Sequence record: NC_041972.1
Reading direction: 5' to 3' (one strand)
DNA: 64,000 nucleotides
This document shows, in pieces, positions 20,911 to 61,413 of this stretch. A program made the position numbers and the translations under genes. Below the pieces are notes generated by a model, which was not told the origin of the DNA, did not search any database, and saw only the letters and a list, made by a program, of their open reading frames with translations. Every line of letters starts with the position of its first letter. Position 1 is the stretch's first letter.

Positions 20911-20970
20911 CGGCATAAAGGCTAGCATTCCCCAACGGGAATGCTAGCCTGCTTATGCTGCTTTTTTTTT
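20911..20970. terminator. Bidirectional terminator between convergent genes
   Basis: 14-bp perfect stem AGGCTAGCATTCCC/GGGAATGCTAGCCT flanked by CGGCATAA and TTATGCTG, plus a T10 run. Confidence 0.85.
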
Positions 20971-36381: not shown

Positions 36382-37641
36382 ATGCAACAGTCAACTTCCC
36401 TCGGCGCTCTGCTGGACCACGCTTACCGTATGGGTGATATTCACCTGATCATTCGTGTGGGCGAACTCGCCACCACTGTCGTTATCCCACACCGTAAAGC
36501 ACGTCACGCCTGTATCGCGTTGCTGGAGTTCTTTGACCGCAATAAGGTACTGGTTCAGCGGGTGCTGGATCGCAGCGGGAATACCATCGACATCACGCTG
36601 GATGATTTCCAACATGAAGCCACCATCCCGGGTTATGATCGCGAGCACTACCTGAAGACCCTGACGCGTCGGGTGGAAGCCTTGGCTGCACCGGATGATG
36701 TTACTGAGCAGACAAACCAAAACGCAGGCATCTATAACCCACATGCTGGGTTTGAGAAAGCCGCGGCGAATGTTGCGCAGTTACTTACGTCAGAGCGGCG
36801 TTATGCGTTTGTCGATCACATCGGATCTGTGGTGGGTGACGGCATGGTCCTGGTGCGTCGTAGTGATCTGCCAAGTAATGTCCAGAACGTAACAGAAATC
36901 ACCGATCCACGCTGGCTCAGTATGTTGGTGGTGAACGAAGCTACTTTCGAGCGTCTACCGGCAGGGCGTGAAGTCTACGCCTATGCACAGGCGACACGGC
37001 TGGGTGATTTGATCAATCTGCTGGGTGAAGAAGGTTTCGCCATCGACGGGATCAGTTATCCGTGGGTGCATATCGTACGCAAAACGGATGTGGTGCGCGA
37101 TGCACGTTCAGTGGAGTGGGGTCAGGTTGCGGATGAACTGACTAACGCTGAAGGGCCAGTGGATATTCGGCAGGCATTAGGCTCTGGTTCATTGAACCCG
37201 TTCCTTCATGAGGATGGGAGTGTGCGCGGGTTACTGTTCTCCGGTCGGCCACAGGGTTACCCAGAGCAACCAGCAACACCTACTGAACCAGTCGTGACCA
37301 AGCTGGTCGAACACGGTATGACCCGTCAGTACGGGTCCGTGACTCCACCACGGACGGTAACCACCTCACCATTGGGTACACCGGCGAGTGTATCGAGTGA
37401 AGCGAAGTGGGCAGCAGCCATTGCTGCAGTAGTGGCAGAGGGTTATGAGTTCCGGGGTAGTAAGGAAGACATCAATCCTGAGTTGTTCAAGGTTGCCTCA
37501 ACGATGAGCTACTGGGCAGGATGCCAGGGTGGTGATACTCTCCAGAAACGAGATGAGGTTGTCTCTACACCGGAGCTGATGATGCTGCTGGCAGGTAAGC
37601 CTTCTGGCAGTACTGTTGATCACGAAGAGAATGACGAATAA
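36382..37641 (+). CDS. Hypothetical protein, 419 aa
   Basis: AAGGA SD. Confidence 0.8.
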   Translation: MQQSTSLGALLDHAYRMGDIHLIIRVGELATTVVIPHRKARHACIALLEFFDRNKVLVQRVLDRSGNTIDITLDDFQHEATIPGYDREHYLKTLTRRVEALAAPDDVTEQTNQNAGIYNPHAGFEKAAANVAQLLTSERRYAFVDHIGSVVGDGMVLVRRSDLPSNVQNVTEITDPRWLSMLVVNEATFERLPAGREVYAYAQATRLGDLINLLGEEGFAIDGISYPWVHIVRKTDVVRDARSVEWGQVADELTNAEGPVDIRQALGSGSLNPFLHEDGSVRGLLFSGRPQGYPEQPATPTEPVVTKLVEHGMTRQYGSVTPPRTVTTSPLGTPASVSSEAKWAAAIAAVVAEGYEFRGSKEDINPELFKVASTMSYWAGCQGGDTLQKRDEVVSTPELMMLLAGKPSGSTVDHEENDE

Positions 37642-37650
37642 GTAAAGCTA

Positions 37651-37690
37651 GGCAGGAGGGGGTAACCTCTCCTGCTCTTTATGCTTTTTT
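37651..37690 (+). terminator. Hairpin (GTAA loop) + TTTATGC + T-tract
   Basis: GGCAGGAGGGG-GTAA-CCTCTCCTGCT then CTTTATGCTTTTTT. Confidence 0.75.
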
Positions 37691-38155
37691 AATTTTTGTC
37701 AAATATAGTATTATGCAATTCTAGTAATTAACGACACGGTAAAGTATACTTATAAGGAGAACAGGCCAGCAATGGGGGAAACCTTTAAGGATGGGGGCTT
37801 ATGCTGATATATATTACAGACAGTATTAACAGTGATATATTGAGTATATCAGCATACCAGTAAGTAGCCTTATAGCTGTCAATAATCATTATCTATTATA
37901 ACCCAGAGAGAACACCCTCTTAGAACAAAGATATAATAGATAATCATTAACCTGTAATCGGATAAAAAAACCGCGAAATTGAAACCGGGAGGCTGAAGCC
38001 TCCCTTTATGCCTGTTTAGTGTATTCTAGTAATTCATGACTAGAGTGGCTAACAGTATGAAAGTATTTAAATCTTTCACCCGAGCTAAGGGTAACGTAGA
38101 GGTTTAGATATATGCTGATTAAATTTTAATTAAGATTAAGAGAAGGATCGTTATC

Positions 38156-38581
38156 ATGACAGATCTCAACAAAGACAACCTCATGAAACCCGGGGATGTG
38201 AAAGCCTTGTTTGCCAATAACGAGCATGTCAATCTCCCAACGTTAATCAGTGAAGTCCGTGGACTGTTTACCCTGTTGTGCAATGAACCCGAGAATGCTC
38301 GCTTCTTGTGGTTTCCAGATCATGCTTCAGTGCTCTCCTGGGTGGGGCAATTCAGTGTACAGTTGAAAGTCTATTTCAGCGGTGAGATTGAAGTGAGCAT
38401 CAATACCGAGCTGGGGGCGTCAGTGATTGGCCAGGAACGGGCGAATGCGTTGGTGTTTGTTGATCGTATCTTACCCCTTACGGGTTACTACGCCAACATC
38501 ACCCATTGGCCTGCAAAAGAGGGGCACGGTGAGATCATCCTGATCCAGTACTTACTGAAGGCGCCGTCCGCTGACGTGTAG
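38156..38581 (+). CDS. Hypothetical protein, 141 aa
   Basis: AAGGA SD. Confidence 0.8.
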   Translation: MTDLNKDNLMKPGDVKALFANNEHVNLPTLISEVRGLFTLLCNEPENARFLWFPDHASVLSWVGQFSVQLKVYFSGEIEVSINTELGASVIGQERANALVFVDRILPLTGYYANITHWPAKEGHGEIILIQYLLKAPSADV

Positions 38582-38595
38582 GGTTATAACTATGG

Positions 38596-38991
38596 GTGAT
38601 TCCGTCCTTGAGTCACACCACTCAACCTGCACACGGCCGAGACATACGCACTATGATAACACAACCCAATGTCAGATTAACCCCCGAGGACACGCAATAC
38701 CGAATCTACCTGGCAAATGACTTAGGTCTGGATTCCAGCCCAATGCTCCATCTGGAGTGGGAAAAAGGACGTAATGAGTATTTAATTGGAGACCTCATCC
38801 TGGCTCGCCAAGGTGATCATTTTCTCCTGTCGATCAAAAGCTGTCGTCGTAAAACTGTCATCGCTTCTGCCAAAGTTTTAGATAACGGCTCAGTGGGCAT
38901 TTATCTAAACCAGTGCTTTAGCAACATGGCCAACAAAGCAGAATTGGTGTTGAGTTTACGCGATGCTGTGACGCGATACCTCTACTGTTAG
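38596..38991 (+). CDS. Hypothetical protein (start 38596 or 38653)
   Basis: ORF filling the gap in a plus-strand operon. Confidence 0.7.
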   Translation: MIPSLSHTTQPAHGRDIRTMITQPNVRLTPEDTQYRIYLANDLGLDSSPMLHLEWEKGRNEYLIGDLILARQGDHFLLSIKSCRRKTVIASAKVLDNGSVGIYLNQCFSNMANKAELVLSLRDAVTRYLYC

Positions 38992-39146
38992 TCGTCGTAT
39001 ATCTTATGAAATAGACTCCTTCGCCCGCCTCCTTCTTCCTGAGGGTCGTGGGTTGAAGGGTCTATGCCGATCGATATGTAATCTAATAAATTTTGTATCT
39101 ATATTACGAATAGGTAATTGTTGGCCAACAACATGACAGCATTTTT

Positions 39147-39725
39147 ATGACTGTCTTATTAACCCCCGGAGTTGCTTCTATGATGAACGAAGATTTTGTC
39201 GGTACTGGTACGTATTACAAGACCGCTGTTGAACAACCAGCTGTACCGACCGTGCCAGTCAGTGATGCACAGATCGTCGAGTCAAGCACCAAGTTTGAAG
39301 CATGGTTAGCCTCCGTGGGTTGGCCGGCATGCAAACGCCCGCGCAGTTACCCGGCTGTGGTGACCTTCTATAAAGGGAAGGCATCCACCTTTACTGCCAT
39401 TGAGATCAATACCCGCACCCGCTACTACCTGGCGATCCAGCGCATGGCGGCAAACTATGCACACCTGGTCAAAGCCGAGCCGAACAAACGTCACCGGATC
39501 ATCTTGCGGGGTTCATTATTGACCAACCGTCTGGATGGTAATGTCGCGGTGGTGCTGGCTGATCAAGATGTCACTGACCTGGTCGTGGGTATCGCCTACA
39601 AAAAGGTCAGTGTCGTGTTTAATCCACAATCGTTTATCAACGCCGTAGAGGATATCGATAACAGCTTTCGCAATCAAAACAAATGGAGCTGGTCGATTGG
39701 CCTGGAGATTGTGACATCCCGTTAG
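39147..39725 (+). CDS. Hypothetical protein, 192 aa
   Basis: Downstream of a CTATATTAC motif at 39099. Confidence 0.75.
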   Translation: MTVLLTPGVASMMNEDFVGTGTYYKTAVEQPAVPTVPVSDAQIVESSTKFEAWLASVGWPACKRPRSYPAVVTFYKGKASTFTAIEINTRTRYYLAIQRMAANYAHLVKAEPNKRHRIILRGSLLTNRLDGNVAVVLADQDVTDLVVGIAYKKVSVVFNPQSFINAVEDIDNSFRNQNKWSWSIGLEIVTSR

Positions 39726-39737
39726 TAGGAATTGGTC

Positions 39738-40139
39738 ATGGAACATTTAACTTTTGCTGATCTCACTGCTGATCAGTTTACTGCTTTACTTCAGACCGTT
39801 ACACACCGTGTAACCATTCATTGTCCCGATAAATGGCTCTGGGTTGATTCATCTGCAAAGCAACCGCAACTTGTGGTTTCTACGCGCTTTTCAGATAAAC
39901 GCAATCCTTCGGGCTGGGCACCCTACCTTACGCGACTCAATCTTCCTTCAGATGTCGAGGTGACATCAGTGTCTGTCCTTTGGATAGAGAAGGCAGATTG
40001 GTTCTTGTATGAAGTAACTGGGGTTGATGCGCAGGGGAGCTTGTGCCATCAGTTTATCAAAGCTACAGTGCAAGGGGAAAAGAAATACAAGACCCACGCA
40101 CTGTGTCTCTATCGGGATCGTCTCACATTACAGGAGTAA
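39738..40139 (+). CDS. Hypothetical protein, 133 aa
   Basis: AGGA SD before ATG 39738. Confidence 0.75.
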   Translation: MEHLTFADLTADQFTALLQTVTHRVTIHCPDKWLWVDSSAKQPQLVVSTRFSDKRNPSGWAPYLTRLNLPSDVEVTSVSVLWIEKADWFLYEVTGVDAQGSLCHQFIKATVQGEKKYKTHALCLYRDRLTLQE

Positions 40140-40144
40140 ACCTC

Positions 40145-40417
40145 ATGAAACTAACTTTATGCCAGGCCAACGGGTATTCATTGATTCACCCGGCGTACCA
40201 CAGCCACACCCCGAAGAACAACGTCGTGTTGGCGGAGGGGAAGTTATCCTTTAAAGACAACCGCTGTTTCCTCGGCACCAAAGAGATCGGCCATGTGTTG
40301 GCGAATGGCAATGTACAGCTGAACACCGATGTGGTGCTACCTACCCTCGGCTTTGTCACCGGGTTGCGTAACCAGATCCGCTTCCTGCACAAAACCATTG
40401 CCCGTCAGCTTCATTAA
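40145..40417 (+). CDS. Hypothetical protein, 90 aa
   Basis: CAGGAG SD before ATG 40145; the track extends it upstream into the previous gene. Confidence 0.75.
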   Translation: MKLTLCQANGYSLIHPAYHSHTPKNNVVLAEGKLSFKDNRCFLGTKEIGHVLANGNVQLNTDVVLPTLGFVTGLRNQIRFLHKTIARQLH

Positions 40418-40626
40418 GGTCACAGGGGGTAGTCCAACTACCCCCTCGCCTTTATGCTCTCTTTTTTTTGTATTTAATTACACAAGAGAGCATCGTATGT
40501 AGGTCAGTCGTGACCACCAATAGTGACAACAACTAAATTAAGTTCACCAGTACTCTTGGCGGGGGATGTGTCAGTAACGGTACGCACCCCCGTTCCTTTT
40601 TTATACCGCACCCAAATTCCCGAACA

Positions 40627-40728
40627 GGTTGAGTAGATCACCCAGGTCACGTTGTCCTAGCAGCGTACTTACGGCGCCCGTCGTATCAGACACCCCCTGC
40701 GTCTAAGTTTGACCCGATCTGCTCGACC
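40627..40728 (+). ncRNA. Putative structured ncRNA or 5' leader (multibranch)
   Basis: 13-bp closing helix GGTTGAGTAGATC/GATCTGCTCGACC (2 GU), inner GGTCA/TGACC helix and three hairpins; intergenic. Confidence 0.5.
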
Positions 40729-40761
40729 TTCCTTATCTACCACTACCCTAAGGAACCTGCT

Positions 40762-41082
40762 GTGAGCGATGATATCAAAGTAACCAAACAACTGACCGTG
40801 TCCGCCCCTGAGCACGGCATCAAGGTACAGATCGACGCCCTGGCATTAAAAGACGATGAGCACGCTGATCCTGAGCAGTACCGGATCATCTCAACCGCGA
40901 TCGCTGAAACTGGTGGTGAGCCGTTGACGGAAGGTGAGTTCAATGATTTCCGTCGCTATGACGAAGAAGGTCGTCTGCTGTTCTCCTTCTTCCCGGCCAG
41001 TGGCATCCTTGAGATTGCCCACGGCTACGACAACGAAATCAACCTGACGGTGGTTGTTACTCTGCGTGAAGTCGCTGCGTAA
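40762..41082 (+). CDS. Hypothetical protein, 106 aa
   Basis: AAGGA SD, GTG start. Confidence 0.8.
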   Translation: MSDDIKVTKQLTVSAPEHGIKVQIDALALKDDEHADPEQYRIISTAIAETGGEPLTEGEFNDFRRYDEEGRLLFSFFPASGILEIAHGYDNEINLTVVVTLREVAA

Positions 41083-41193
41083 TGCCTTGCTCAGGTTTAG
41101 GGGTGCGGCGTAACAGCCGCACTATCTCCGTACGGGAGAAACGACGCCGTACTGCGCTCTATCGTGCCTTAGCTAAAGCTAGAGAGGTGTGCG

Positions 41194-41433
41194 GTGGAGC
41201 GAACTGAACTTATGGCCGGCGGGGAATACACCCACTATAAAGGCGGTTGCTACAAGGTTGTTGGGTTTACGAACCTGCATGCAAAAGACAACCCGCAGTT
41301 TATCCCGCAAGTGGTGTATCACTCGATCAGTCCGAACGACCCCAATAACTGGTACTCGCGTCCACTGAGTGAGTTCCTGGAAAAGTTCAGGCCAATTACG
41401 CCTGAAGATGTGAAGGCCGACATCGGTCTTTAA
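41194..41433 (+). CDS. DUF1653-family protein
   Basis: YTHYKGG.Y.V...VVY...WYSRPLSEF signature. Confidence 0.8.
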   Translation: MERTELMAGGEYTHYKGGCYKVVGFTNLHAKDNPQFIPQVVYHSISPNDPNNWYSRPLSEFLEKFRPITPEDVKADIGL

Positions 41434-41508
41434 GCACGACCCGGCTTACGAGCCACGGTGTTACGACACCACCTTTAACTACTACTCTTAACTACTAAGG
41501 AATGACTA

Positions 41509-42648
41509 ATGTCCATGATCGTGAAAATCACCTCGGGTGAAGATAAAGCTGACAACAATGTGAGCAAAGGGTTTGAACTGATCCCAGTAGCGGCCGGTAT
41601 GCGCACTGCCTTTGAGCGCGATGAACAATCCCGCGCCTGGTTTAAGTTGTTCAATACGGATGCAGAAGGTATTGAACAGCAACTGCTCACCCGTCAGGTA
41701 CTGGGTAACGTCTATGTGATGGAAGCCGGTAAGACTATCGCCAGTTTCTCCTCGGCCGATATCAGTGATATCCGGACGTCAGCAGAAGGCACAGTGTTCT
41801 TGAGCAGCCCTGCCAACGGTATCAGTAACCAACCTTATACCGAGCCCGATATCTCAGAGCTCAACATATTGGGGTATAATGACCGCCTGCACGACTATAC
41901 CGAGCTGCCTTTCATCACCTCAGAAGAAGTGAATAATGCCCGGGTGTTTAAGTTTCACGCCAACCCAGAGCCAGAAGTCTGGTATGTCAATGCCGACAAA
42001 AAGTGGCAGCTGCATGAGCAGGCAACACTCAACCATCGTCAGTCTTGCGCAGTAGCCAGTGAGCGCGTAGATGTCGAGGAGTTTGCCAAGGAGCTCGCCC
42101 TGGCCGTATTTGACAGTACCGATGTTTCAGCCAGCAATGATAACATGATGTTTATCAAAACGTTGGCGGCGACGGTGATGACTGCGCACGAGAAGAACGT
42201 CACTGACTACATGGGCCTGGAATTGTTGTCAATCATTCGAGTGCCATTCTCGCGTATCAAATACCTGGAAGAGTATCTGCGTGTGTGCAAGTATCCGGTA
42301 CTGTGTAAGTTCGCCACTGAAGGCACACGTATCGTGAGTTACCATGTGCGAGTGTATGAGCCGATCAATAACATCCTGTCTGGCACCGAGCTGCTGCTCC
42401 AACGCCTCAAAGGCGAACAGAAAGGCCTGGTAAAGAACCTGGTTGATAAGATCGTTAAGTACTACCGTGCGGATTGCACTGTCGTACCGGTCGAGCCCAA
42501 CCTGGTTTTTGATTCACTCGAGGATCGGGCGCTGATCGATGAGTTCAGACGGTTGCTTAAAATCCAGCTGGACTTCATCATGAACGATGACGGTCACTGC
42601 CATACCGCAGTGATCAGTTATCCGAGCATCATCCGTATGGGTGAGTAG
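41509..42648 (+). CDS. Hypothetical protein, 379 aa
   Basis: AAGGA SD; long ORF. Confidence 0.85.
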   Translation: MSMIVKITSGEDKADNNVSKGFELIPVAAGMRTAFERDEQSRAWFKLFNTDAEGIEQQLLTRQVLGNVYVMEAGKTIASFSSADISDIRTSAEGTVFLSSPANGISNQPYTEPDISELNILGYNDRLHDYTELPFITSEEVNNARVFKFHANPEPEVWYVNADKKWQLHEQATLNHRQSCAVASERVDVEEFAKELALAVFDSTDVSASNDNMMFIKTLAATVMTAHEKNVTDYMGLELLSIIRVPFSRIKYLEEYLRVCKYPVLCKFATEGTRIVSYHVRVYEPINNILSGTELLLQRLKGEQKGLVKNLVDKIVKYYRADCTVVPVEPNLVFDSLEDRALIDEFRRLLKIQLDFIMNDDGHCHTAVISYPSIIRMGE

Positions 42649-42767
42649 CAGGTATTTGTAAATAAATACTAGATATCTGCTATTACTATGTAAACTACGA
42701 CGCTCCGAAAATCCCCCAAGATAAAGGAGTCATAACCTCTCCGTTATGCGCCTCGTAGTTTTCTTTT

Positions 42768-42844
42768 GAGACAGGCAAGGACGTCGACTGGGTTCAGCTG
42801 ATACTGTAAAGTGTTGCTGTGTGTGCCCGGTCCCTTGCCGTCTC
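42768..42844 (+). ncRNA. Rod-like GU-rich hairpin, putative ncRNA
   Basis: Nested helices GAGAC/GTCTC, GGCAAGG/CCTTGCC, GACTGGGT/GCCCGGTC, CAGC/GCTG and GATACT/AGTGTT with a GTAA loop. Confidence 0.45.
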
Positions 42845-43001
42845 CTTTTTCTCGATTTGTGCGATTCTCTTCCAGGCTGTTCTTACCTGATCTCGTGTCA
42901 GGAAACAGATCGAAGACAGACATGCGAATCAACTTTGGTAGTGCCTACTATATACACACTTAGCTGTAAATTTTACTCAAAAGCAATATTAAGGATGACC
43001 C

Positions 43002-43169
43002 ATGGACAAGCAGAGAGAAGATTCTATCGTTGAGATGATGACACTCGCTCAGCGATTAAATAACTTAGTCGTTGGAATGCAAGTCCGCAAAGCCCAGTTA
43101 ACGTCAGGTTCCGCCAAAGTCGTCGCTGATGCAATCAGCAAAGCGAATGTGAAACCTGAGGATCACTGA
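43002..43169 (+). CDS. Small hypothetical protein, 55 aa (below track cutoff)
   Basis: Hand-translated MDKQREDSIVEMMTLAQRLNNLVVGMQ...; AAGGA SD. Confidence 0.55.
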   Translation: MDKQREDSIVEMMTLAQRLNNLVVGMQVRKAQLTSGSAKVVADAISKANVKPEDH

Positions 43170-43557
43170 GGTAGCCGTAAACGTAGTGGGTATGGTGGGG
43201 ATCAATGATAGCCCTGCTCGGTGAGTTTGTTAATCCCCGCCGTATCGCTTCGTAGAACACAGGGTCACTCATGACGTGGGGAGTGGCATAAACACCTGGG
43301 GTAGAAGTCCCAACTACATCCAAAATTCAATGACGCCTGTCACAGCCGCTTAAGCGCGCAGAAGATGACTTGTGTGCTCTGTGGCGATACTCGGACTTGC
43401 CAGCCTGTGGGGGCGGAGTAAAGTCTGGGTATTAGCCCGCTGCCATGTTACCACGTGAAAGTCGTGGGGGCGTCACCCTATTAGATCGATCGCTGACAGT
43501 ACGTGTTTATACTTACTTGCTTCTCTGGTTACGCTAACCTATCGTGAGGAGATAAAC

Positions 43558-43854
43558 ATGAATCTGTATATAGTCAAACGTGATGATAGAGCTGTGGATT
43601 TCGAACAGTGTGCGGGGATGGTGGTTGCTGCGTCGTCTGAGGATGAAGCTTTGCGATTGCACCCGATGGTTCTTGACTCTAGCCACCCAGACAATGCTGA
43701 GCGGCACCTGGCTGAATCGGCGGAGAACTTCGAGGATGGTACGTTGTACGGCTGGCCTAGCCAGGACCGTTTTCACGAACTGACCATCACCTTGATCGGA
43801 ACCACACACCTGACTATTCCGCAAGTTCTGTTACTCGACTATAAAGGCGGTTGA
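43558..43854 (+). CDS. Hypothetical protein, 98 aa
   Basis: GAGGAG SD. Confidence 0.8.
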   Translation: MNLYIVKRDDRAVDFEQCAGMVVAASSEDEALRLHPMVLDSSHPDNAERHLAESAENFEDGTLYGWPSQDRFHELTITLIGTTHLTIPQVLLLDYKGG

Positions 43855-43973
43855 TCTAAGTCCGGGGTAACACCCGGACACCCTATTCTGTTTTTCAGTA
43901 CATCACTGGAAGATACTATCGAGAGCAGCCACTCCGATACTCTAACTTATAAAGTTTAAAAAGGATAATAACG

Positions 43974-44627
43974 ATGTCAACCGAAATGACCATTTCTCGT
44001 GCACTGGCTACAGTGAAGTCTTTGAATGTCCGCATCAAAGATATCTCTAAAAAGCAGGTGCTGATTCTGCCAACCGCCGGTACTGGCGACATGCAATCGG
44101 TGATCAACAACAGCATCACTGTTACCGATGCTGAAGCCGCCATCCAGAATAACTGGAATGCGCTGAACGACATGATCAAAGTGCGTAACGATATTCGTGC
44201 GAAGATCATCCTGTCGAACGCCACAACCAAAGTGACCATCGCCGGTAAAGAATACACCATTGTTGAGGCATTGGACTTCCGCAACTCCCTGGTCGAAAAG
44301 AAAGACACGGTTGAGTGCCTGAAGCGCAACTACGACTCCACAATGAAAGTTCACCGCCAGCAGGGCGACATCTACGAAAAGCGTTTAAGCGATGTGCGCT
44401 CCGAAGCCCTGGCCTCCGGCAAGAAGTTTGATGAAGCCAGCTTGAAGACCTTCACCGATCCAATCGATGTGAAGATGAAACCAGGCCTGATCGATCCTCT
44501 GGGTATCTCAGCAGTTATTGAGAAGCTGGACAAAGAGATCGCTGACTTCGAACTTAACGCCGACTACGCGTTGTCCGAATCTAACGCAACGACCAAGATC
44601 ACTGTTGAACTTGGTAACATTGCTTAA
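43974..44627 (+). CDS. Alpha-helical/coiled-coil protein, 217 aa, adjacent to a structured ncRNA
   Basis: AAGGA SD; biased codons; helical heptads; internal repeat SNATTK(V/I)T at two positions. The layout recalls DIP1984-like helical proteins (unverified). Confidence 0.85.
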   Translation: MSTEMTISRALATVKSLNVRIKDISKKQVLILPTAGTGDMQSVINNSITVTDAEAAIQNNWNALNDMIKVRNDIRAKIILSNATTKVTIAGKEYTIVEALDFRNSLVEKKDTVECLKRNYDSTMKVHRQQGDIYEKRLSDVRSEALASGKKFDEASLKTFTDPIDVKMKPGLIDPLGISAVIEKLDKEIADFELNADYALSESNATTKITVELGNIA

Positions 44628-44723
44628 CCCGTATTAAAAGGCTTGTCTTCGTTTGACGAAAGATCAAACACCGCCTTCCTATTTGGCCGGATGGAAGTAA
44701 AATAACCGGCCAGCCATTATACA

Positions 44724-44789
44724 TCTGTAGGTCGCAGGTTCGATTCCTGTCGGGGTGAAACCCGTAGCTCAGTCGGTTAGAGCAGCAGA
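44724..44789 (+). ncRNA. Circularly permuted tRNA-like element (not a decoding tRNA)
   Basis: TCTGT-AGGTC-GCAGG-TTCGATT-CCTGT-CGGG-GTGAAA-CCCG-TA-GCTC-AGTCGGTTA-GAGC-A-GCAGA: anticodon stem 3' strand, variable loop, T arm, capped acceptor, D arm, anticodon stem 5' strand. Confidence 0.85.
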
Positions 44790-44862
44790 ACAACCGCTTA
44801 TGCTAAAAGCAATGATCTTTGGGATCATCAATGGTGTACTGTGAGCACCTTGAAATCACAGG

Positions 44863-44930
44863 TCTAAAGCTTAAAGCTATAACGTATAATGACTAAAGCT
44901 CTAAAGGTTTAAACTTATAACGTTAAAAAG
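44863..44930 (+). repeat. Degenerate 7-8-nt tandem repeats (TAAAG/TATAAC-type)
   Basis: TCTAAAG CTTAAAG CTATAAC GTATAAT GACTAAAG CTCTAAAG GTTTAAAC TTATAAC GTTAAAAAG. Confidence 0.75.
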
Positions 44931-45101
44931 ATCTACACTCCCTGATGACTGTGTTCGTCGGGCTATAACGCTAAAACCTTTTAAACAAATCCTGGGTATT
45001 CCTCCGCTGTGAGGATGGGTAATGTGGAGTGTGGTCTGCCACGTATCGCCGCCAGGCTGTCTTGCGGAGACAAGTCTTTCCCTTTTGCAATAGGTGACCT
45101 A

Positions 45102-45272
45102 ATGACAGGCACTGCATCAATGATCATTGAGCAACCACAACCGGAATTCAATATCCCGTTGAGGTCGCCTTATCCTACCCTTCATGACGTAAGGTTTTCT
45201 ATGTTCCCTGTTATGGGTGAACCTGAGAACGAAGGGTTCGAACAAGATTCAGAAACTGACGCATTACATTGA
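45102..45272 (+). CDS. Small hypothetical protein, 56 aa
   Basis: AGGTG SD before ATG 45102; the track's longer version overlaps the ncRNA. Confidence 0.5.
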   Translation: MTGTASMIIEQPQPEFNIPLRSPYPTLHDVRFSMFPVMGEPENEGFEQDSETDALH

Positions 45273-45313
45273 GGAGATTCAATCGCGCAGGTTCTTAACC
45301 GACTAAAGCCAGG

Positions 45314-45541
45314 GTGACTTGTGTTATCTTGGTAAAAGGTGAACGCGTCGTTACAGCGCATACGACTGAATGGGCCGATCCCCCCTTCGGAGTAATATTA
45401 GCCCAGATCCATTGCACACCAATAAGTCAATGGCTAGCCAGACACACAAAAAACTATTATGCTTCGACAGATGGTAGGTGCCTGATTACTACAATTCGAT
45501 TCGATACCTCAACTAAAAGGCGGACACAAGGGCCGTTATGA
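45314..45541 (+). CDS. Possible small hypothetical protein, 75 aa
   Basis: GTG start with weak SD; otherwise unsupported. Confidence 0.3.
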   Translation: MTCVILVKGERVVTAHTTEWADPPFGVILAQIHCTPISQWLARHTKNYYASTDGRCLITTIRFDTSTKRRTQGPL

Positions 45542-45878
45542 GTGAAGCACCAGGAAACTATACCTTGGTAAGGCCCCAGGCTTTTTATCCTTACCAAGGT
45601 TCTCTTTCTTTTACTACCTGATAATGGGTGGATGCCTTAGTCACCTTTCTTTCACAGAGGCAACAACCTAAGGCGTCTGCCCGCCCTATAACCCGAGTCG
45701 TCTAGCGACAAGACACCGTCAGACCCATTTGGTAACAGCCTAACTTACCTGTTACCCAACCTATGACGGAAACAGGTGGTTCAACTCCACCTCTTGGGTC
45801 TTAGGTATTGGCTTAGGCAAACTCCGTCGCGGCTTTACCCTCAATAGGCTGCGTTGCGTAAGTCAGTACCGTGCTGTG

Positions 45879-46033
45879 CGTCGTACTCCCTGATGAGGCG
45901 CCCGACGTTAAAAGGCACGAAACGGGGACAGAGGATACTCCATCGGTGATTGCAATCAACCACGCTGGGGTTTATACAGGCACTTGAGAGACACGCTGGT
46001 TTCTCGTTGCCTGTCCCTTTGTCCCGTCGGAGT
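45879..46033 (+). ncRNA. Type I hammerhead ribozyme
   Basis: CUGAUGA (45890-45896), stem II G...C, GAAA (45919-45922), stem III ACGGG(G)ACAGAGG/CCUUUGUCCCGU, cleavage triplet GUC (46026-46028), stem I ACUCC/GGAGU. Confidence 0.8.
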
Positions 46034-46435
46034 CCCTTGCGTTCCTGGAGGGATGACACCGCGTTAAGACTGATCCCCTTAACGAAGTTGCAATAGCCGG
46101 GGGTGATTCTTGCAAAGGTTACTCACAGCAGACTGCCTCCGCCAATTGCGGATGGCTTAGGCCCTCAGTCCGTCAGGAAGTTGTCGTTGAATAAGTGACA
46201 GCTGGACTAGGGTTGCATTATAACCCGGCAAGTGTGCAGCCTGTTTTTTCTTCATGTGTACCTGAACCGGTTCAGGAGCCTACAGATGAGGGAACGACGG
46301 GAAGCATATTGCTACCGATCATTTGCTGTGTGACCGGGCCAAGGATGGCATATACCGGAACCAGTAACCGTATTCAGCGCAGGTGCGCTTTCTCTTCCTT
46401 ATCTTGTGGTTAAACCGCGCCTGTCTGGATCATAT

Positions 46436-46466
46436 GTGCCGGGGTCACACCTGGCGCTTATGCCGT
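46436..46466 (+). terminator. Hairpin + TTATGCCG
   Basis: GTGCCGGG-GTCACA-CCTGGCGC then TTATGCCGTC; closes the RNA island. Confidence 0.65.
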
Positions 46467-46540
46467 CTGAGTTGTATCCTTTTTTACTCCTACATTACGA
46501 AGCTGATATACCCATCAATTCAATTTAAAGGAGTTTAGTT

Positions 46541-46963
46541 ATGAAGAACGTTACTATTGCTATTGGTCGTAATCCGCTGTCCAACCAGAAATGGATTCTG
46601 GATCAGATCGTGAGTCTGGTGAAGTCCGGTAAGTCCGACATCTTCATCGTCAATACCGACTCACGGGTTTCCACTGCGGTACTCAATGCCTTGAAAGAGT
46701 ATACGAAGGATGATGCGGAATACACTCGCTTGGTTGCTGAGAACGGTGTCATGTTCCACACAACCGAGACCGAAGACCTGCAAACGCTGGATGATGCTAA
46801 GATGAACAGCCGGTCGGCGATTCTGGCCAACATGCTGTTCAGCCTGCCATTGGTCAAACAGTGTCGTGATCTGGCGCGTCATCACGTCCCGGTCTTTGTG
46901 AGTGCCACACCTGCCATGTCTGGTAAGGTGCCGGCTTCCGCCCATACCAAGTTCCTCGATTAA
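46541..46963 (+). CDS. Hypothetical protein, 140 aa
   Basis: AAGGAG SD; CTACATTAC motif at 46490. Confidence 0.85.
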   Translation: MKNVTIAIGRNPLSNQKWILDQIVSLVKSGKSDIFIVNTDSRVSTAVLNALKEYTKDDAEYTRLVAENGVMFHTTETEDLQTLDDAKMNSRSAILANMLFSLPLVKQCRDLARHHVPVFVSATPAMSGKVPASAHTKFLD

Positions 46964-46972
46964 GGATAGCCC

Positions 46973-47434
46973 ATGGTAAATCACCTGTGGGGTCAGTTGT
47001 CGGAGCGTGCAATTCGCGCTGCTGCTACTGACCTACGGTTGAAGCCTGTAGAGAGCCTGCCCATGTGTTGGGCAGAGCTCCTCTCCATCGGGATCACCAA
47101 ACCCCTTGGACGCTTTGACGTTCTTACCCATATTGGCCGTCGTCCTGAGCTTCACTATTTAACTGTGTTAGCAGAGGAAGGTGTCCGTTTCATCGATGTG
47201 TTAGCGGAAGATACTGATGCCCGTCACGCACATCGCGCTCGAGCAAACGCAGTCTGCTATTATGACAAAGATCAGAAGCCGCAACTGTGTTGGTTATACC
47301 TCTCCCGTGGTGAGTTAACGGAGGGGAATTTTAGTCGTGCTGTGCGTGAAGGTATTCATCGTGTCGCTGGGAAGTTCCCGGAGGACACCAACACTCACTT
47401 CTGTGATCTATCGGGATTGACCCATGCTAAGTAA
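46973..47434 (+). CDS. Hypothetical protein, 153 aa
   Basis: AAGGA SD. Confidence 0.8.
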   Translation: MVNHLWGQLSERAIRAAATDLRLKPVESLPMCWAELLSIGITKPLGRFDVLTHIGRRPELHYLTVLAEEGVRFIDVLAEDTDARHAHRARANAVCYYDKDQKPQLCWLYLSRGELTEGNFSRAVREGIHRVAGKFPEDTNTHFCDLSGLTHAK

Positions 47435-49661: not shown

Positions 49662-50636
49662 ATGTCAAAACGTTTAACCCGCATCTACGCTTGTGGCGGT
49701 GCTGCCATCAACATCACCGCGGCGCAGAAGGACCAGCACGATCAACTGGGCTTCTCTGACCTCAGCGTATCACGTATCGATACTTCGGATAAGAACATCA
49801 AACCAGGCATGTCACCGAACAGCGTCTACATCCTGGAAAACGCAGACGGTTCTGGTAAAGAGCGTAAGCACAACTACAAAGCGATCGTGGCCTCACTCGA
49901 ACAGATCCTGGCGATGCACAAACCGGGCGATTACAACATCGTCATGATGTCAGCCTCAGGCGGTTCTGGTTCGGTCATCGGTCCGGTAATCATTGGCGAA
50001 CTGCTGAAGCGTAAGATCCCAGTGGTTGCGCTGGTTGTGGGTACCATCGGTTCTGAAACTGAAACGCAGAACTCCATCAATACCCTGAAGTCCCTGGCCG
50101 GTGTCTCTGAAGCTCAGAAAGCCCCACTGGTGATGTCATACTTCCCGGTGAACCAGCACTTCGATCAGCGTGAAGTGGACAAGCAAGTCCTGACCACCAT
50201 GACGCTGTTGCTCAACCTGTTCGACTCGAAGAACATCGAAATCGATTACAAAGATATCGTGAACTTCCTGAACTACACCAACATCCGTAACACCCGCCCT
50301 GGCCTGGTTGGCCTCGAAACGTACAACGACGACGAACTGCAGACCATCGCTGGTACCTCGCCGTTGTCCATGGCGTCAGTGTTCAAAGATGATAACCGTC
50401 CGTTCCTGCCGGTTACCCCGGACTACCATGCCACCGGTACCCGTGACCAGGACATGAAAGATGAGCGTATGCAGTTCAATGCGCACTATGTCATTACCTC
50501 GGCGCCGGTTAAAATGGCGTTTGAAGATCTGAACAAACGTATGAAGCAGATCACTGATCAGCAACATACTCGCGGCCAGAACTTCAACCTGCTGGGTGAT
50601 GGCGACCAGGGTGACGATAACGGGATGTTCCTGTAA
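49662..50636 (+). CDS. phuZ: Phage tubulin PhuZ
   Basis: IYACGGAAINI (T1 loop), SGGSGSVIG (tubulin signature), acidic C-terminal DDNGMFL tail. Confidence 0.95.
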   Translation: MSKRLTRIYACGGAAINITAAQKDQHDQLGFSDLSVSRIDTSDKNIKPGMSPNSVYILENADGSGKERKHNYKAIVASLEQILAMHKPGDYNIVMMSASGGSGSVIGPVIIGELLKRKIPVVALVVGTIGSETETQNSINTLKSLAGVSEAQKAPLVMSYFPVNQHFDQREVDKQVLTTMTLLLNLFDSKNIEIDYKDIVNFLNYTNIRNTRPGLVGLETYNDDELQTIAGTSPLSMASVFKDDNRPFLPVTPDYHATGTRDQDMKDERMQFNAHYVITSAPVKMAFEDLNKRMKQITDQQHTRGQNFNLLGDGDQGDDNGMFL

Positions 50637-59277: not shown

Positions 59278-61413
59278 ATGAAAACTCCTGAAGGCGAAAA
59301 CAAGGCACAGGGTCAGCAGCCATCTGACCAGCAGCAGCCTAACAATTCGGCAATGGGTGATGCGCTACTACAAGCGCAACAGAGGCAGAGTCAGCAGCCA
59401 CAGCAGCAGCAAACTCCGCCTCAACAAGCGCCGCAGTCAGCACCTCAACCAGTGCAAGCAGCAACCCAGCAACAGCAACACACCCCACAATTTCATCAGA
59501 CTGCAGGTAACAGCACCGTGAACAACACAACTAACAACACCAACACCGAACAACAGCAGCCGCGTCAGTCACGCATTTACGGCATGAACGAACGCCGTTC
59601 TCGTATCTTCGACGCGACCGCGTTTGGTGAAAACTTTAAGATCGCGCTGGAAGCGACCAAAGAAGTGCTGGAAGGCTATGAAGATAAAGGTTTCAACAAA
59701 TCTTTCTTCCTGGTTCCCGTTGCTGATGCAACCCTGCACTGCAATGGCCTGGCGTATGCGTCTGTGTTCAACTTCGGCGGCAGCACCAAAGCAATCGTCT
59801 ATACCCTGATGCTGGAAAACACCGGCTCGCCACTGAAACCACAGCGCGGTAACGATCCACTGACGGGCGAACCGTTTGAGATCCCACGCATGACCGGTTC
59901 TCAGTACGACAACACCTACTGGGCTCGTGTAGCACAGCTGGTCGCGCACCGTGTTGGTAACAACGCAGAAGTGCTGGATGCTGGCGCCTGTGTGGTGCAC
60001 GCTGAGATGAAGTGGGACGACAAGTCTGCGATCAAACAGCTGCTGAACAACGCAGAAAACGCCACCATGGCGTATGCGAACAGCCTGTCTGGTTACCGTA
60101 TCGAACCACCATTCAACATCGCGCAGGAAGTGGACCCGAACATCGACCGCATCACCGCGGGCTTTAACTTCAATCCACAGCCGCTGTTCACTGTTGATGG
60201 TCAGCCGATCCGTAACGACGTCGAAGTGAAACTGTCTGCTTACGCAGAAGGCGCAGGCCAGGTTCAGACCACCGAAGCCATCACCACCGTGAACGGCTAT
60301 GTTGAGCTGATCGCTGCACCGCAGCAGCAGATGGGTTATCAGCAGCAGATGATGATGGGTATGAACCCGCAGCAGGCGATGCAGTTCTACCGTCGCTTCT
60401 ACCCGCAGTTCACCATCACTTCAACTGGTACCGGTATCTCTAACGCACAGGGTCCTGAGTTCCAGCTGCTGGCGCTGTTCGCTGCTTCACTGATTGGTGA
60501 AAACAGCAACTGGCACCATGCGTTTGCGCCGAAGATGGTAAACGGTGTCGATATCAACGATATCGGTGCGATCAACTACGAACTGAAAATGGGTCTGGAA
60601 AGCCCAGATGACCGTCCGAAGAAGATCATCACCAAAGACCACAGCTTCACCACGCAGGCTCTGCATCAGCTGCTGTACACCGCATGCCACGAATCCATGT
60701 CAATCGCGATCGACATCGAAGAGACCGGCACGCGTACCTGGGTTAACTCCATGCTGCTTCTGGCTGGCGGTCAACCAAACGGTAATGCTGCAGCACTGAG
60801 CCCACAGGGTCAGCAGGCGCACAAAGCGATCATCCAGGCGGCGAACAACCTGACCAACGGTGAGTTCAGCAAACACTTCACCGATCAGAACCAGCTGATT
60901 GCTGTACGTGACGGTACCCGTATTCAGGGTGGTTTCTACGTCTCTAAAGACAACCATCAGAAAATGGATATCCGTAACGTCGACCTGCTGGCGGTTCTGA
61001 ACTTCGTCGGTGAAACTGATCCGCGTATCGTGGAAGAGTGGAAAATCATCACCAGCTCTACTTCTGGTATGTCTACTCCGAAACGTGTCGCGCTGCGTCA
61101 GCAGAAACTGCAGCAGCTGCTGGGTGAGTCTTTCGTCCTGAAAGCTTACTACGAGCGTGTAGTGATCAACTGGGCATTCATGGATGCTCTGCGTAAAGCA
61201 ATCACTGCAGCAGGCCTGATCGTGCGTCCGGAAAACACCAACATGCAGTACAACGTACAGAGCTACGGCACGCCAATGGCGCAGCTGTACGGCATGCCTA
61301 CCAACATCGGCAGCTCACTGCAGCAGGGCGCTTACGCAACCGACAACCAAGGTCGCGTAGTGAACATGGCAGCGTTCCGTACTGGTGGTGCATTCGGTAC
61401 GTTCAACGGCTAA
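59278..61413 (+). CDS. chmA: Chimallin, major phage nucleus shell protein
   Basis: 711 aa; position between DNA polymerase and nvRNAP beta'; highly biased codons; early promoter upstream; Q-rich N-terminus. Confidence 0.88.
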   Translation: MKTPEGENKAQGQQPSDQQQPNNSAMGDALLQAQQRQSQQPQQQQTPPQQAPQSAPQPVQAATQQQQHTPQFHQTAGNSTVNNTTNNTNTEQQQPRQSRIYGMNERRSRIFDATAFGENFKIALEATKEVLEGYEDKGFNKSFFLVPVADATLHCNGLAYASVFNFGGSTKAIVYTLMLENTGSPLKPQRGNDPLTGEPFEIPRMTGSQYDNTYWARVAQLVAHRVGNNAEVLDAGACVVHAEMKWDDKSAIKQLLNNAENATMAYANSLSGYRIEPPFNIAQEVDPNIDRITAGFNFNPQPLFTVDGQPIRNDVEVKLSAYAEGAGQVQTTEAITTVNGYVELIAAPQQQMGYQQQMMMGMNPQQAMQFYRRFYPQFTITSTGTGISNAQGPEFQLLALFAASLIGENSNWHHAFAPKMVNGVDINDIGAINYELKMGLESPDDRPKKIITKDHSFTTQALHQLLYTACHESMSIAIDIEETGTRTWVNSMLLLAGGQPNGNAAALSPQGQQAHKAIIQAANNLTNGEFSKHFTDQNQLIAVRDGTRIQGGFYVSKDNHQKMDIRNVDLLAVLNFVGETDPRIVEEWKIITSSTSGMSTPKRVALRQQKLQQLLGESFVLKAYYERVVINWAFMDALRKAITAAGLIVRPENTNMQYNVQSYGTPMAQLYGMPTNIGSSLQQGAYATDNQGRVVNMAAFRTGGAFGTFNG

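Follow-up and report, generated by a model that had tools for sequence, protein, structure and literature searches.

Closest described systems and identity of the locus

In phage T4, the tRNA region encodes the homing endonuclease SegB beside eight tRNAs and the stable RNAs species 1 and 2, both of unknown function. With its stable RNAs that are not tRNAs, its small open reading frames (ORFs) and its landing site for a homing endonuclease, it resembles the locus described here, a region of about 3.8 kb at positions 42650–46466 of a 64,000-nt stretch of sequence record NC_041972.1 (the window), which comes from Erwinia phage vB_EamM_Deimos-Minion (DM). Unlike this locus, the T4 region is not known to have a ribozyme or a permuted tRNA, and in the DM group the real tRNA is a single optional gene, while tRNA-like RNAs dominate.

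The type I hammerheads of phages (Perreault et al. 2011, PMC3088659; RF00163 and relatives) share with the ribozyme of the DM locus the full core, the GUC triplet, three helices, an open stem I, a pseudoknot brace between stem I and loop II and a position between genes in a long phage transcript. The DM ribozyme differs in that neither it nor its four compact relatives are seen by Rfam, in a stem III insert of about 85 nt and in its location within a conserved structured RNA of about 0.8 kb, 3' of a tRNA-like cloverleaf. The tRNA-like domain of YrlA (Chen et al. 2014, PMC4201824; RF02553) has the same permuted arm order and the same conserved T-loop and D-loop residues as a tRNA mimic in the DM locus, and likewise a likely tRNA origin. 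The DM mimic, however, lacks the Ro-binding stem, scores below the gathering score, occurs in phage genomes without Ro60/TROVE and has a parent that can be named, the tRNA-Asn(GUU) of the sister phages. GOLLD and ROOL (Weinberg et al. 2017, PMC5737381; preprint 10.1101/2024.12.08.627333) are also large (0.5–0.8 kb), ornate, phage-borne RNAs of unknown function that sit beside tRNA genes. Their resemblance to the DM RNA is in context only: there is no match in sequence or structure, and neither has been reported with a self-cleaving ribozyme such as the one predicted in the DM RNA. Finally, the Salmonella rsr-yrlBA-rtcBA operon (PMC7790460) places a tRNA-like RNA and an RtcB ligase in the same genome, whereas the phage pair lies about 120 kb apart and is not accompanied by Rsr, RtcA or RtcR. 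Each component has a known counterpart, namely pseudoknotted phage hammerheads, YrlA-type mimics, phage tRNA regions that also encode stable RNAs, and large phage RNAs located next to tRNA genes. The combination itself is covered by no Rfam family or paper that we found, in agreement with the first-pass annotation, made from the sequence alone, which recognised no described system of this kind; nor did we find a paper on structured RNAs of this kind in Chimalliviridae.

The window matches positions 124001–188000 of KU886225.1 at 100%, and a window position equals the record position minus 124000. DM is a jumbo phage of the fire-blight bacterium, belonging to the genus Agricanvirus (Chimalliviridae). 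The window encodes chimallin (Pfam Chimallin_Phikzvirus, 59278–61413), PhuZ tubulin (Pfam Tubulin/TubZ_C_2, 49662–50636), an RNA polymerase subunit (Pfam RNA_pol_Rpb1_2) and a divergent PolB; the presence of chimallin, PhuZ and the RNA polymerase subunit identifies DM as a nucleus-forming jumbo phage. The locus is at least 99% identical in 16 records from nine phages, and its sole diverged relative is Erwinia phage AH06, with about 80% identity. BLAST searches of cultured phages, IMG/VR and JGI metagenomes gave no relatives of the RNAs past AH06 and one fragment of 98.6% identity. The comparison therefore spans two lineages, of which the DM group is 99% identical and AH06 about 80%. The AH06 annotation surveyed below amounts to about 260 kb and leaves out AH06 150–164 kb.

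The features that the first-pass annotation had seen at 42650–46466 are present and, overall, confirmed. As to what it made of them, its reading held in part: the structured plus-strand RNAs, the hammerhead and the tRNA mimic stood, while a pure non-coding RNA (ncRNA) locus, the meaning given to the boundaries and a ribonucleoprotein system were not supported. We consider it rather probable that the locus is an accessory cluster of Agricanvirus derived from a tRNA locus, in which four small protein genes are interleaved with conserved structured RNAs. All features described within the locus are on the plus strand.

Large structured RNA

A strong structure signal was found at 45691–46540 (850 nt), which folded with z = -7.2/-7.6 on the plus strand and -1.7 on the minus strand, compared with -1.8 ± 1.5 (minimum -4.7) in 22 control windows of the same length. 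When the structure predicted from DM only was confronted with the AH06 substitutions, 59 changed pairs were kept and 21 broken (74% kept), against 29–35% kept in five coding controls. RNAalifold predicted 277 pairs in the large RNA, 24 of them doubly compensated. The substitutions were spread evenly over the codon phases (55/54/55), as opposed to 43/20/103 in gp207 and 14/9/62 in gp209, and the ORFs that some records annotate within this segment differ among genomes, even in strand. Judged by these patterns, the large RNA (45691–46463, about 0.78 kb, MFE z = -7.4) is a conserved non-coding RNA that matches no described family; the GOLLD and ROOL models of Rfam gave no match at E<=10 over 42000–47000.

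The large RNA opens with a cloverleaf tRNA-like domain at 45691–45799 (z = -4.5 in DM and -4.4 in AH06), which was not called by ARAGORN or by the Rfam tRNA model. It has a 7-bp acceptor-like stem, in which a C-G pair is replaced by U-A in AH06, a D-like arm, a 54-nt arm (45716–45769) that takes the position of the anticodon arm and shows two A-U to G-C changes, and, at 45774–45792, the T-like arm GGUGG-UUCAACU-CCACC. A long irregular hairpin follows at 45804–45870, with two compensatory pairs and several one-sided changes. Then comes the hammerhead, and 3' of its predicted cut the cleavage product would be a multi-branched RNA of about 435 nt (46029–46463) with a predicted 5'-OH end, ending at a terminator hairpin. 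For 46029–46540 the z-score was -4.2, 30 changed pairs were kept and 11 broken, and the substitutions were again flat across the codon phases.

Hammerhead ribozyme

The first-pass annotation had reported a hammerhead ribozyme within the locus, and the analysis bears this out. By manual reading, a descriptor scan and comparison with homologues, a type I hammerhead was located at 45879–46033. Its pseudoknot strand CGUCG (45879–83) pairs with CGACG of loop II (45903–07), and the 5' strand of stem I, ACUCC (45885–89), with the 3' strand GGAGU (46029–33). The catalytic core consists of CUGAUGA (45890–96) and GAA (45919–21), which flank stem II and its loop (45897–45918). Stem III (45922–46027) carries a two-hairpin insert, A45922 and U46027 form the pair A15.1-U16.1, and C17 is at 46028, with predicted cleavage between 46028 and 46029. 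The conserved core, C3-U4-G5-A6-N7-G8-A9, G12-A13-A14, A15.1-U16.1 and H17 not G, is complete in DM.

The descriptor scan returned this single match in the window, compared with two matches in 300 dinucleotide shuffles on both strands (0.007 expected per window). A descriptor scan with shuffles was chosen instead of a covariance model because MAFFT did not align the compact ribozymes in a structurally consistent way. No Rfam hammerhead family was found in the window at the gathering score or at E<=10, and none in the compact relatives at E<=1.

These relatives are four unrelated metagenomic phage contigs (L007, L139, L146 and L154) recovered by a search pattern that combined the core with loop II. 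The core is identical in DM, AH06 and the four contigs (six sequences). Since core and loop sequence had served to select the relatives, only their stems, cleavage triplet and pseudoknot partner count as independent support. DM has ACUCC/GGAGU as stem I and AH06 has UACUCC/GGAGUA, while UUUAAA/UUUAGA, UAUUAA/UUAAUG and UUAU/AUAA occur in others; in L146 this stem pairs only with a 1-nt offset. Stem III differs in each lineage, with AGAGG/CCUUU in DM becoming GGGGG/CCCCU in AH06, and is a compact hairpin in the four contigs. The 5-bp pseudoknot between the 5' tail and loop II lies a constant 11 nt upstream of C3, and its fifth pair is G-C in DM, U-A in AH06 and C-G in two contigs. The element is a type I hammerhead with a complete core, three helices, an open stem I and a tertiary brace between stems I and II. 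Self-cleavage should occur at C46028/G46029 and leave 2',3'-cyclic phosphate and 5'-OH ends.

Scanning the window for a further hammerhead (type I, II or III) gave none; the approximately 260 kb of AH06 gave one extra match, inside a coding sequence (CDS) and probably due to chance. A second CTGATGA at 44943 was rejected as a ribozyme, AH06 having CACGCGA there. With one ribozyme only, self-cleavage can mature one junction at most, which does not support the earlier proposal of a polycistronic ncRNA locus matured by self-cleavage; circular or excised products of paired ribozymes are likewise not expected.

In a BLAST search of 50,697 cultured-phage records, the hammerhead subtype was found in Agricanvirus only. 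In all four relatives from outside this genus, the hammerhead is in a leader, 200–310 nt ahead of a start codon, three of the four precede an Amidoligase_2 gene, and one sits 9 nt past a tRNA. These positions support a role in separating transcripts. In L007 (reverse complement, rc, 229–434), L139 (rc 1255–1487) and L146 (rc 229–430), the leaders contain short conserved blocks, all before Amidoligase_2, and the block GCUUCNNCUGAGUGUGUGCUC is common to L007 and L139; ribozyme and leader may be a cassette that moves between phages. In the jumbo-sized contig L154 (ERZ1673962 NODE-3, 231.8 kb, GC 53%), the same hammerhead subtype at 943–1000 is followed by a structured leader of 314 nt (z = -3.95) and an ORF of 80 aa with an acidic product.

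The positions of the relatives also bear on a different explanation of the ribozyme and the RNA that follows it. The hammerhead and the approximately 510 nt after it could be the 5' untranslated region of the gp209–gp213 operon, acting only in cis: a 5'-OH end would alter mRNA stability, and a sequestered Shine-Dalgarno sequence would tune translation, with no role in trans. The leader position common to all four relatives, with the Amidoligase_2 gene behind three of them, speaks for this, as do the proposal of mRNA processing for phage hammerheads (Perreault et al., PMC3088659) and the gp209 leader at 46478–46540, where ACUCCU pairs with the Shine-Dalgarno sequence AGGAGU about 50 nt downstream. 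The predicted pairing is kept in AH06, with zero substitutions that could show covariation. However, a strong hairpin with UUAUGC at 46436–63 separates the RNA from gp209, and this motif marks 3' ends elsewhere in the window; furthermore, the cloverleaf and the long hairpin upstream of the cut are equally conserved and structured, and a leader role gives no account of them. We regard a purely cis-acting leader as a possible explanation, on balance unlikely.

Permuted tRNA mimic

A permuted tRNA mimic, also claimed in the first-pass annotation, was located at 44724–44789. In the minimum free energy (MFE) fold of the single DM sequence it consists of a closing stem (44724–28/44785–89), a T arm (44734–50), a closed acceptor hairpin (44751–64) and a D arm (44767–83). 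The Rfam model YrlA (RF02553) matched 44726–44789 with its positions 23–87 of 114 (44.5 bits, E = 9e-8; gathering score 69). This partial match was the only Rfam match at E<=10 over 42000–47000, and at the gathering score there was none in the whole window. The acceptor hairpin is CGGG/CCCG in DM and UAGCCU/AGGCUA in AH06, so that the sequence is all different and the pairing is kept.

The origin of the mimic can be traced. Its 5' part is identical at 22 of 25 positions to positions ~38–62 of the tRNA-Asn of the sister phages, and its 3' part at 21 of 24 to positions ~8–31, the halves being in swapped order. The closing stem corresponds to the old anticodon stem and has a compensated G-C to A-U change. 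Since the tRNA-Asn halves are swapped and the anticodon loop is missing, the mimic represents a circular permutation of tRNA-Asn(GUU). It is kept in all 17 genome records, including those without tRNA-Asn, with orthologues in Ea35-70, MadMel and AH06.

The permuted halves, about 85% identical to tRNA-Asn, and the RtcB ligase of the phage might suggest a true permuted tRNA gene, whose halves are circularised or ligated (e.g., by RtcB) into a working tRNA-Asn, as in the red alga Cyanidioschyzon. Yet no anticodon loop or GUU anticodon lies beside the closing stem, and the acceptor helix of 4–6 bp with a loop of 4–6 nt cannot yield a 7-bp stem, a discriminator and CCA. The hairpin sequence also differs wholly between DM and AH06, unlike an identity element of an aminoacyl-tRNA synthetase. 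Such a gene is extremely improbable, and a functional permuted tRNA-Asn gene was ruled out on anatomy.

The first-pass annotation had further proposed that the RNAs possibly form a phage ribonucleoprotein system, and a more specific version of this proposal would make the mimic a phage Y RNA that serves RNA quality control or repair together with a Ro60-like ring protein (host Rsr) and/or the RtcB of the phage, on the model of the Salmonella operon. YrlA is indeed the sole significant Rfam similarity in the locus, RtcB and KptA are encoded by the phage, and jumbo phages that carry TROVE together with a tRNA-like partner have been described (PMC7824862). In contig L060, our positive control, a Ro60 gene whose product has TROVE and vWA_Ro60 domains lies about 200 nt from a module of the same kind. 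In Agricanvirus, however, the match is partial and below the gathering score, and the Ro-binding stem is missing: positions 1–22 and 88–114 of the YrlA model are unmatched, and RNAalifold found no conserved or covarying long flanking stem. No TROVE domain (Pfam) was found in 38 ORFs (30 of the window and 8 of AH06) or in the AH06 annotation, and tblastn with the phage Ro60 of L060 returned 356 phage records, none of them from Erwinia phages, whose whole genomes were covered. Among jumbo phages, Iyer et al. (PMC7824862) report TROVE in part of groups 2 and 3 only. The mimic lacks both the Ro-binding stem and a phage Ro60 and is not a Y RNA as the family is defined. The obvious partner of a YrlA mimic is absent from the Agricanvirus genomes. 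No ribonucleoprotein is indicated, and we hold a Y-RNA-type particle to be quite unlikely.

A scan of IMG/VR by the spacing of T arm and D arm gave nearly exclusively head-to-tail tRNA arrays, with mimic-like matches only in L055, L060 and L027. At 11350–11464 of L027, two tRNA-like units have one closed acceptor-type hairpin in common (Rfam tRNA, 29.2 bits over 115 nt); this composite may be a further case of a tRNA that was permuted or fused.

tRNA-Asn site and insertion hotspots

No tRNA gene was detected in the DM window by ARAGORN or the Rfam tRNA model, and the real tRNA-Asn is found in sister phages only (PMC6690015). Comparison with these phages revealed an empty tRNA-Asn(GUU) site between 43327 and 43328. 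Ea35-70, RAY, Simmy50, Bosolaphorus, Mortimer and Rebecca carry there an 81-bp cassette with tRNA-Asn(GUU), which is cleanly missing in DM and Desertfox and replaced by an ORF of an HNH/NUMOD4 homing endonuclease in MadMel and Special G, while AH06 has an unrelated ORF of 92 aa. A second hotspot is the variable segment 45541–45690, where AH06 has an ORF of 172 aa instead (AH06_219, phrog_2586). With an optional tRNA-Asn, its replacement by an HNH gene and a second hotspot, the locus behaves as a phage tRNA region with homing-endonuclease traffic. The AH06_219 product gave weak P-loop hits, and the insertion at this hotspot may be a mobile gene cassette. In addition, an environmental Agricanvirus fragment (L008, the same as L149; 98.6% identical to DM) contains an insertion of about 518 bp at 45611–45616 (contig positions 92–611).

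The same traffic could be read as decay, the locus being debris of tRNA genes and homing endonucleases with functionless RNAs. A tRNA-Asn that is present, absent or replaced by HNH among 99%-identical phages would be expected then, as would the two further insertion hotspots and a mimic demonstrably derived from tRNA-Asn. Decay does not agree with non-coding blocks conserved above the neighbouring genes, with pairing preserved by substitutions at twice the control rate or with an acceptor hairpin that is wholly rewritten and still pairs; nor does it agree with a hammerhead core intact in both lineages and a mimic kept where the real tRNA was lost. We therefore consider it very improbable and keep to the reading of the locus as a tRNA-derived accessory cluster.

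Protein genes

As the first-pass annotation had stated, the locus contains few short ORFs and one gene of 217 aa, the annotated CDS being gp205, gp206, gp207 and gp208 only. About 2.5 of the 3.8 kb (66%) are non-coding. The intergenic gaps within the locus measure 355, 383, 374 and 670 nt, and outside it none exceeds about 315 nt in the AH06 annotation. Identity to AH06 is by and large 80–94% in the non-coding blocks, with 88–94% in 44628–45090 and 66–90% in 45690–46540, compared with about 75% in the gp207 CDS; on these values, the non-coding blocks are conserved as much as the genes or more.

The gene gp205 (43002–43169, 55 aa, phrog_11017) differs between DM and AH06 at 10/12/28 sites per codon position, the fast-evolving gp206 (43558–43854, 98 aa, phrog_5444) at 45/32/62, and gp207 (43974–44627, 217 aa, phrog_1491, E = 1e-72) at 43/20/103. 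The short form of gp208 (45102–45272) encodes an acidic protein of 56 aa, whose C-terminal part shows 2/1/9 differences per codon position and ends in the conserved EPENEGFEQDS; phrog_10783 spans residues 32–87 of the long form. Judged by the pattern of substitutions over codon positions, all four are coding, and the locus is not a pure ncRNA locus.

The family phrog_1491 carries the label 'tail fiber protein', which gives gp207 a putative function at most. This protein had no Pfam or PDB match, and a Csl4-like hit, at 20.6 bits far short of the cut-off (90), was too weak to be used. A distant gp207 homologue from IMG/VR (L006, 28% identity) was also set aside, its RNA neighbourhood not being comparable.

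Terminator-type and promoter-like motifs

Hairpins followed by TTATGC were surveyed in the window with the criterion of a GC-rich hairpin of at least 6 bp and TTATGC within 4 nt. Thirteen sites were found, compared with 2.4 in shuffled sequences, nearly all of them intergenic. Four are located just past the stop codons of convergent genes, and there are two pairs arranged as bidirectional palindromes. The intergenic, convergent-stop and palindromic placement marks the combination of hairpin and TTATGC as a terminator signature. Neither CTTATGC nor CTATAACG alone is enriched in the window; only the combination of hairpin and TTATGC is. The palindromic pairs, GCATAA-hairpin-TTATGC at 20918/20953 and 48678/48706, are perfect, lie between convergent genes and are likely bidirectional terminators.

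Both ends of the locus have such an element, as the first-pass annotation had pointed out for hairpin and TTATGCC, with unequal strength. The right one (46436–46463) is strong, with an 8-bp GC-rich hairpin (46436–57) and UUAUGC (46458–63). The left one (42726–42749), 78 nt past the gp204 stop, is weak: a 4-bp hairpin GGAG/CUCC (42726–42), under the 6-bp cut-off of the survey, and TTATGC (42744–49), which is TTATGT in AH06. The motif occurs genome-wide and is not specific to the locus.

The early-promoter-like motif TATATTAC (cTATATTAC) occurs at four sites (17460, 37810, 39100 and 59201), all intergenic and on the plus strand, one of them about 70 nt upstream of chimallin. It agrees with the phiKZ early-promoter consensus and is probably the early promoter of Agricanvirus. 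The phiKZ late start motif is TATG (PMC4666361). With TATG embedded in the hairpin and TTATGC element, termination and re-initiation may be coupled.

A second gene-free, AT-rich stretch of about 515 nt was observed at 37641–38156. It contains hairpin and TTATGC elements at 37679 and 38006, the TATATTAC site at 37810 and the duplicated motif TTCTAGTAATT (37719 and 38024), and it resembles a promoter/terminator hub. Over the surrounding 850 nt (37401–38250) z was -4.7, and Rfam at E<=1 returned nothing over 37400–41600. The lowest 200-nt z-scores of the sliding scan (-6.3 and -3.4) were found at 40401–40800, around a hairpin with TTATGC and a U-run at 40452.

Other non-coding elements

Most of the remaining sequence had been described in the first-pass annotation as long helices. 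This is true of roughly half of the non-coding sequence: the signal is strong in 45691–46540, moderate in 43330–43475 and in some local hairpins, and fails in 45273–45540. The sliding z-score scan in 200-nt windows did not set the locus apart from its surroundings; only the long-range folding of 45691–46540 does.

Before gp205, an element at 42850–42935 is about 95% identical to AH06 and forms nested hairpins, and the pairing of its hairpin CCUGAU...AUCAGG survives a U-G to U-A change. A structured element 3' of the tRNA-Asn site (43330–43475) has an outer stem UGACGCC/GGCGUCA round a long hairpin and is followed by CACCCUAUU. RNAalifold on DM and AH06 gave 12 compensatory pairs, 9 one-sided and none broken there; with the structure of DM only, 20 changed pairs were kept and 16 broken. 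After the gp206 stop, a GC-rich hairpin GUCCGGGG-UAAC-ACCCGGAC followed by ACCCUAUU (43862–43881) is conserved in AH06, and the segment 43855–43973 had z = -3.4. The sequence CACCCUAUU (CACCUUAUU in AH06) lies 3' of two structured elements, at 43466–43481 and 43872–43889, and may represent a further kind of signal for processing or termination.

Two hairpins follow the gp207 stop at 44637–44712; the first part (44637–44680) is 100% identical to AH06, and 44684–44712 is an 8-bp hairpin. The segment 44862–44975 is made up of A/U-rich, weakly structured repeats (UAUAACG three times and UAAAGC four times) with a non-conserved CUGAUGA, and it contains the only exact copy of CTATAACG in the window. 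A near-invariant element before gp208 (44986–45078) is about 98% identical to AH06, with predicted hairpins and too few substitutions for covariation. The stretch 45273–45540 is conserved (about 76–80% identity to AH06) and has no clear structure (z = +0.4; 13 pairs kept and 15 broken).

RtcB, KptA and a possible processing pathway

Hammerhead cleavage leaves 2',3'-cyclic phosphate and 5'-OH ends, and RtcB is known to ligate ends of these two types. The enzyme is encoded in all Agricanvirus genomes (Pfam, 424 bits), outside the window at 44991–46226 of the DM record and at 44941–46179 in L155. A Tpt1/KptA 2'-phosphotransferase was found in AH06 (140 bits). The RtcB protein is 99% identical between DM and AH06, compared with about 52–80% in the neighbouring DNA, which suggests unusually strong constraint or recent exchange.

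On the assumption of rightward transcription by the RNA polymerases of the phage, the hammerhead would cut at C46028/G46029 without protein, and the upstream part, with the tRNA-like domain and the ribozyme, would end in a 2',3'-cyclic phosphate. The downstream piece would be either a stable structured 5'-OH RNA of about 435 nt or, upon read-through of the terminator, the leader of gp209. Self-cleavage would fit transcription inside the protein-walled nucleus, which is thought to keep host RNases out. The tRNA-like elements would offer a tRNA elbow to proteins that recognise tRNAs and could serve as processing handles, a punctuation of the RNase P/Z type, and/or as decoys or platforms. A platform role might tie them to the phage RtcB ligase and to KptA, which act on ends of the types made by a hammerhead.

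A more far-reaching reading, which we hold to be rather unlikely, is a new class of large phage RNAs processed by a ribozyme, in which cloverleaf and hammerhead are released from the ornate RNA of about 435 nt by protein-free processing inside the nucleus, and this RNA acts in trans together with the mimic. It might then be a decoy of, or a platform for, tRNA-directed host defences and the RtcB/KptA repair enzymes, or it might assemble itself into a particle like GOLLD and ROOL.

Several observations weigh against the reading of the locus as a tRNA-derived RNA cluster processed by self-cleavage. The ribozyme escapes the hammerhead models of Rfam, and cleavage could be slowed by the large insert of stem III or by a G.A mismatch that DM has at stem II positions 10.2/11.2, where AH06 has U-A. 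The closing stem of the mimic is one pair short in AH06. There is no structure signal in 45273–45540 or in most of 44628–45101 outside the mimic and its hairpins. As there are two lineages only, the covariation counts rest on a single divergence. None of the four TATATTAC sites of the window is inside the RNA locus, and the transcript ends, promoters and expression of the locus are all inferred. The link of RtcB and KptA to the locus is an inference as well, and since RtcB is about 120 kb away, no genomic linkage supports a functional tie.

Significance

What is new in the locus is a hammerhead subclass unseen by curated models, in DM with a large insert in stem III; a Ro-less mimic derived from tRNA-Asn; a structured RNA of about 0.8 kb without a family; and the co-occurrence of these in a chimallivirus. 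The current Rfam hammerhead models overlook a pseudoknotted type I subclass that is present in several phage lineages. The mimic is a clear example of a Y-RNA-like molecule that arose by permutation of an identifiable tRNA and has no Ro60 partner. Should the RNAs be leaders or processing signals only, their description would still be a useful annotation for 17 genome records with inconsistent hypothetical ORFs. Nucleus-forming jumbo phages transcribe their genes in a shell thought to exclude host enzymes, which raises the question of how their RNA is processed, exported and protected. For this question the locus offers testable handles: a ribozyme whose cut site is predicted, a tRNA mimic kept by selection even where the real tRNA is dispensable and a large conserved RNA without a family, in phages that encode RtcB.

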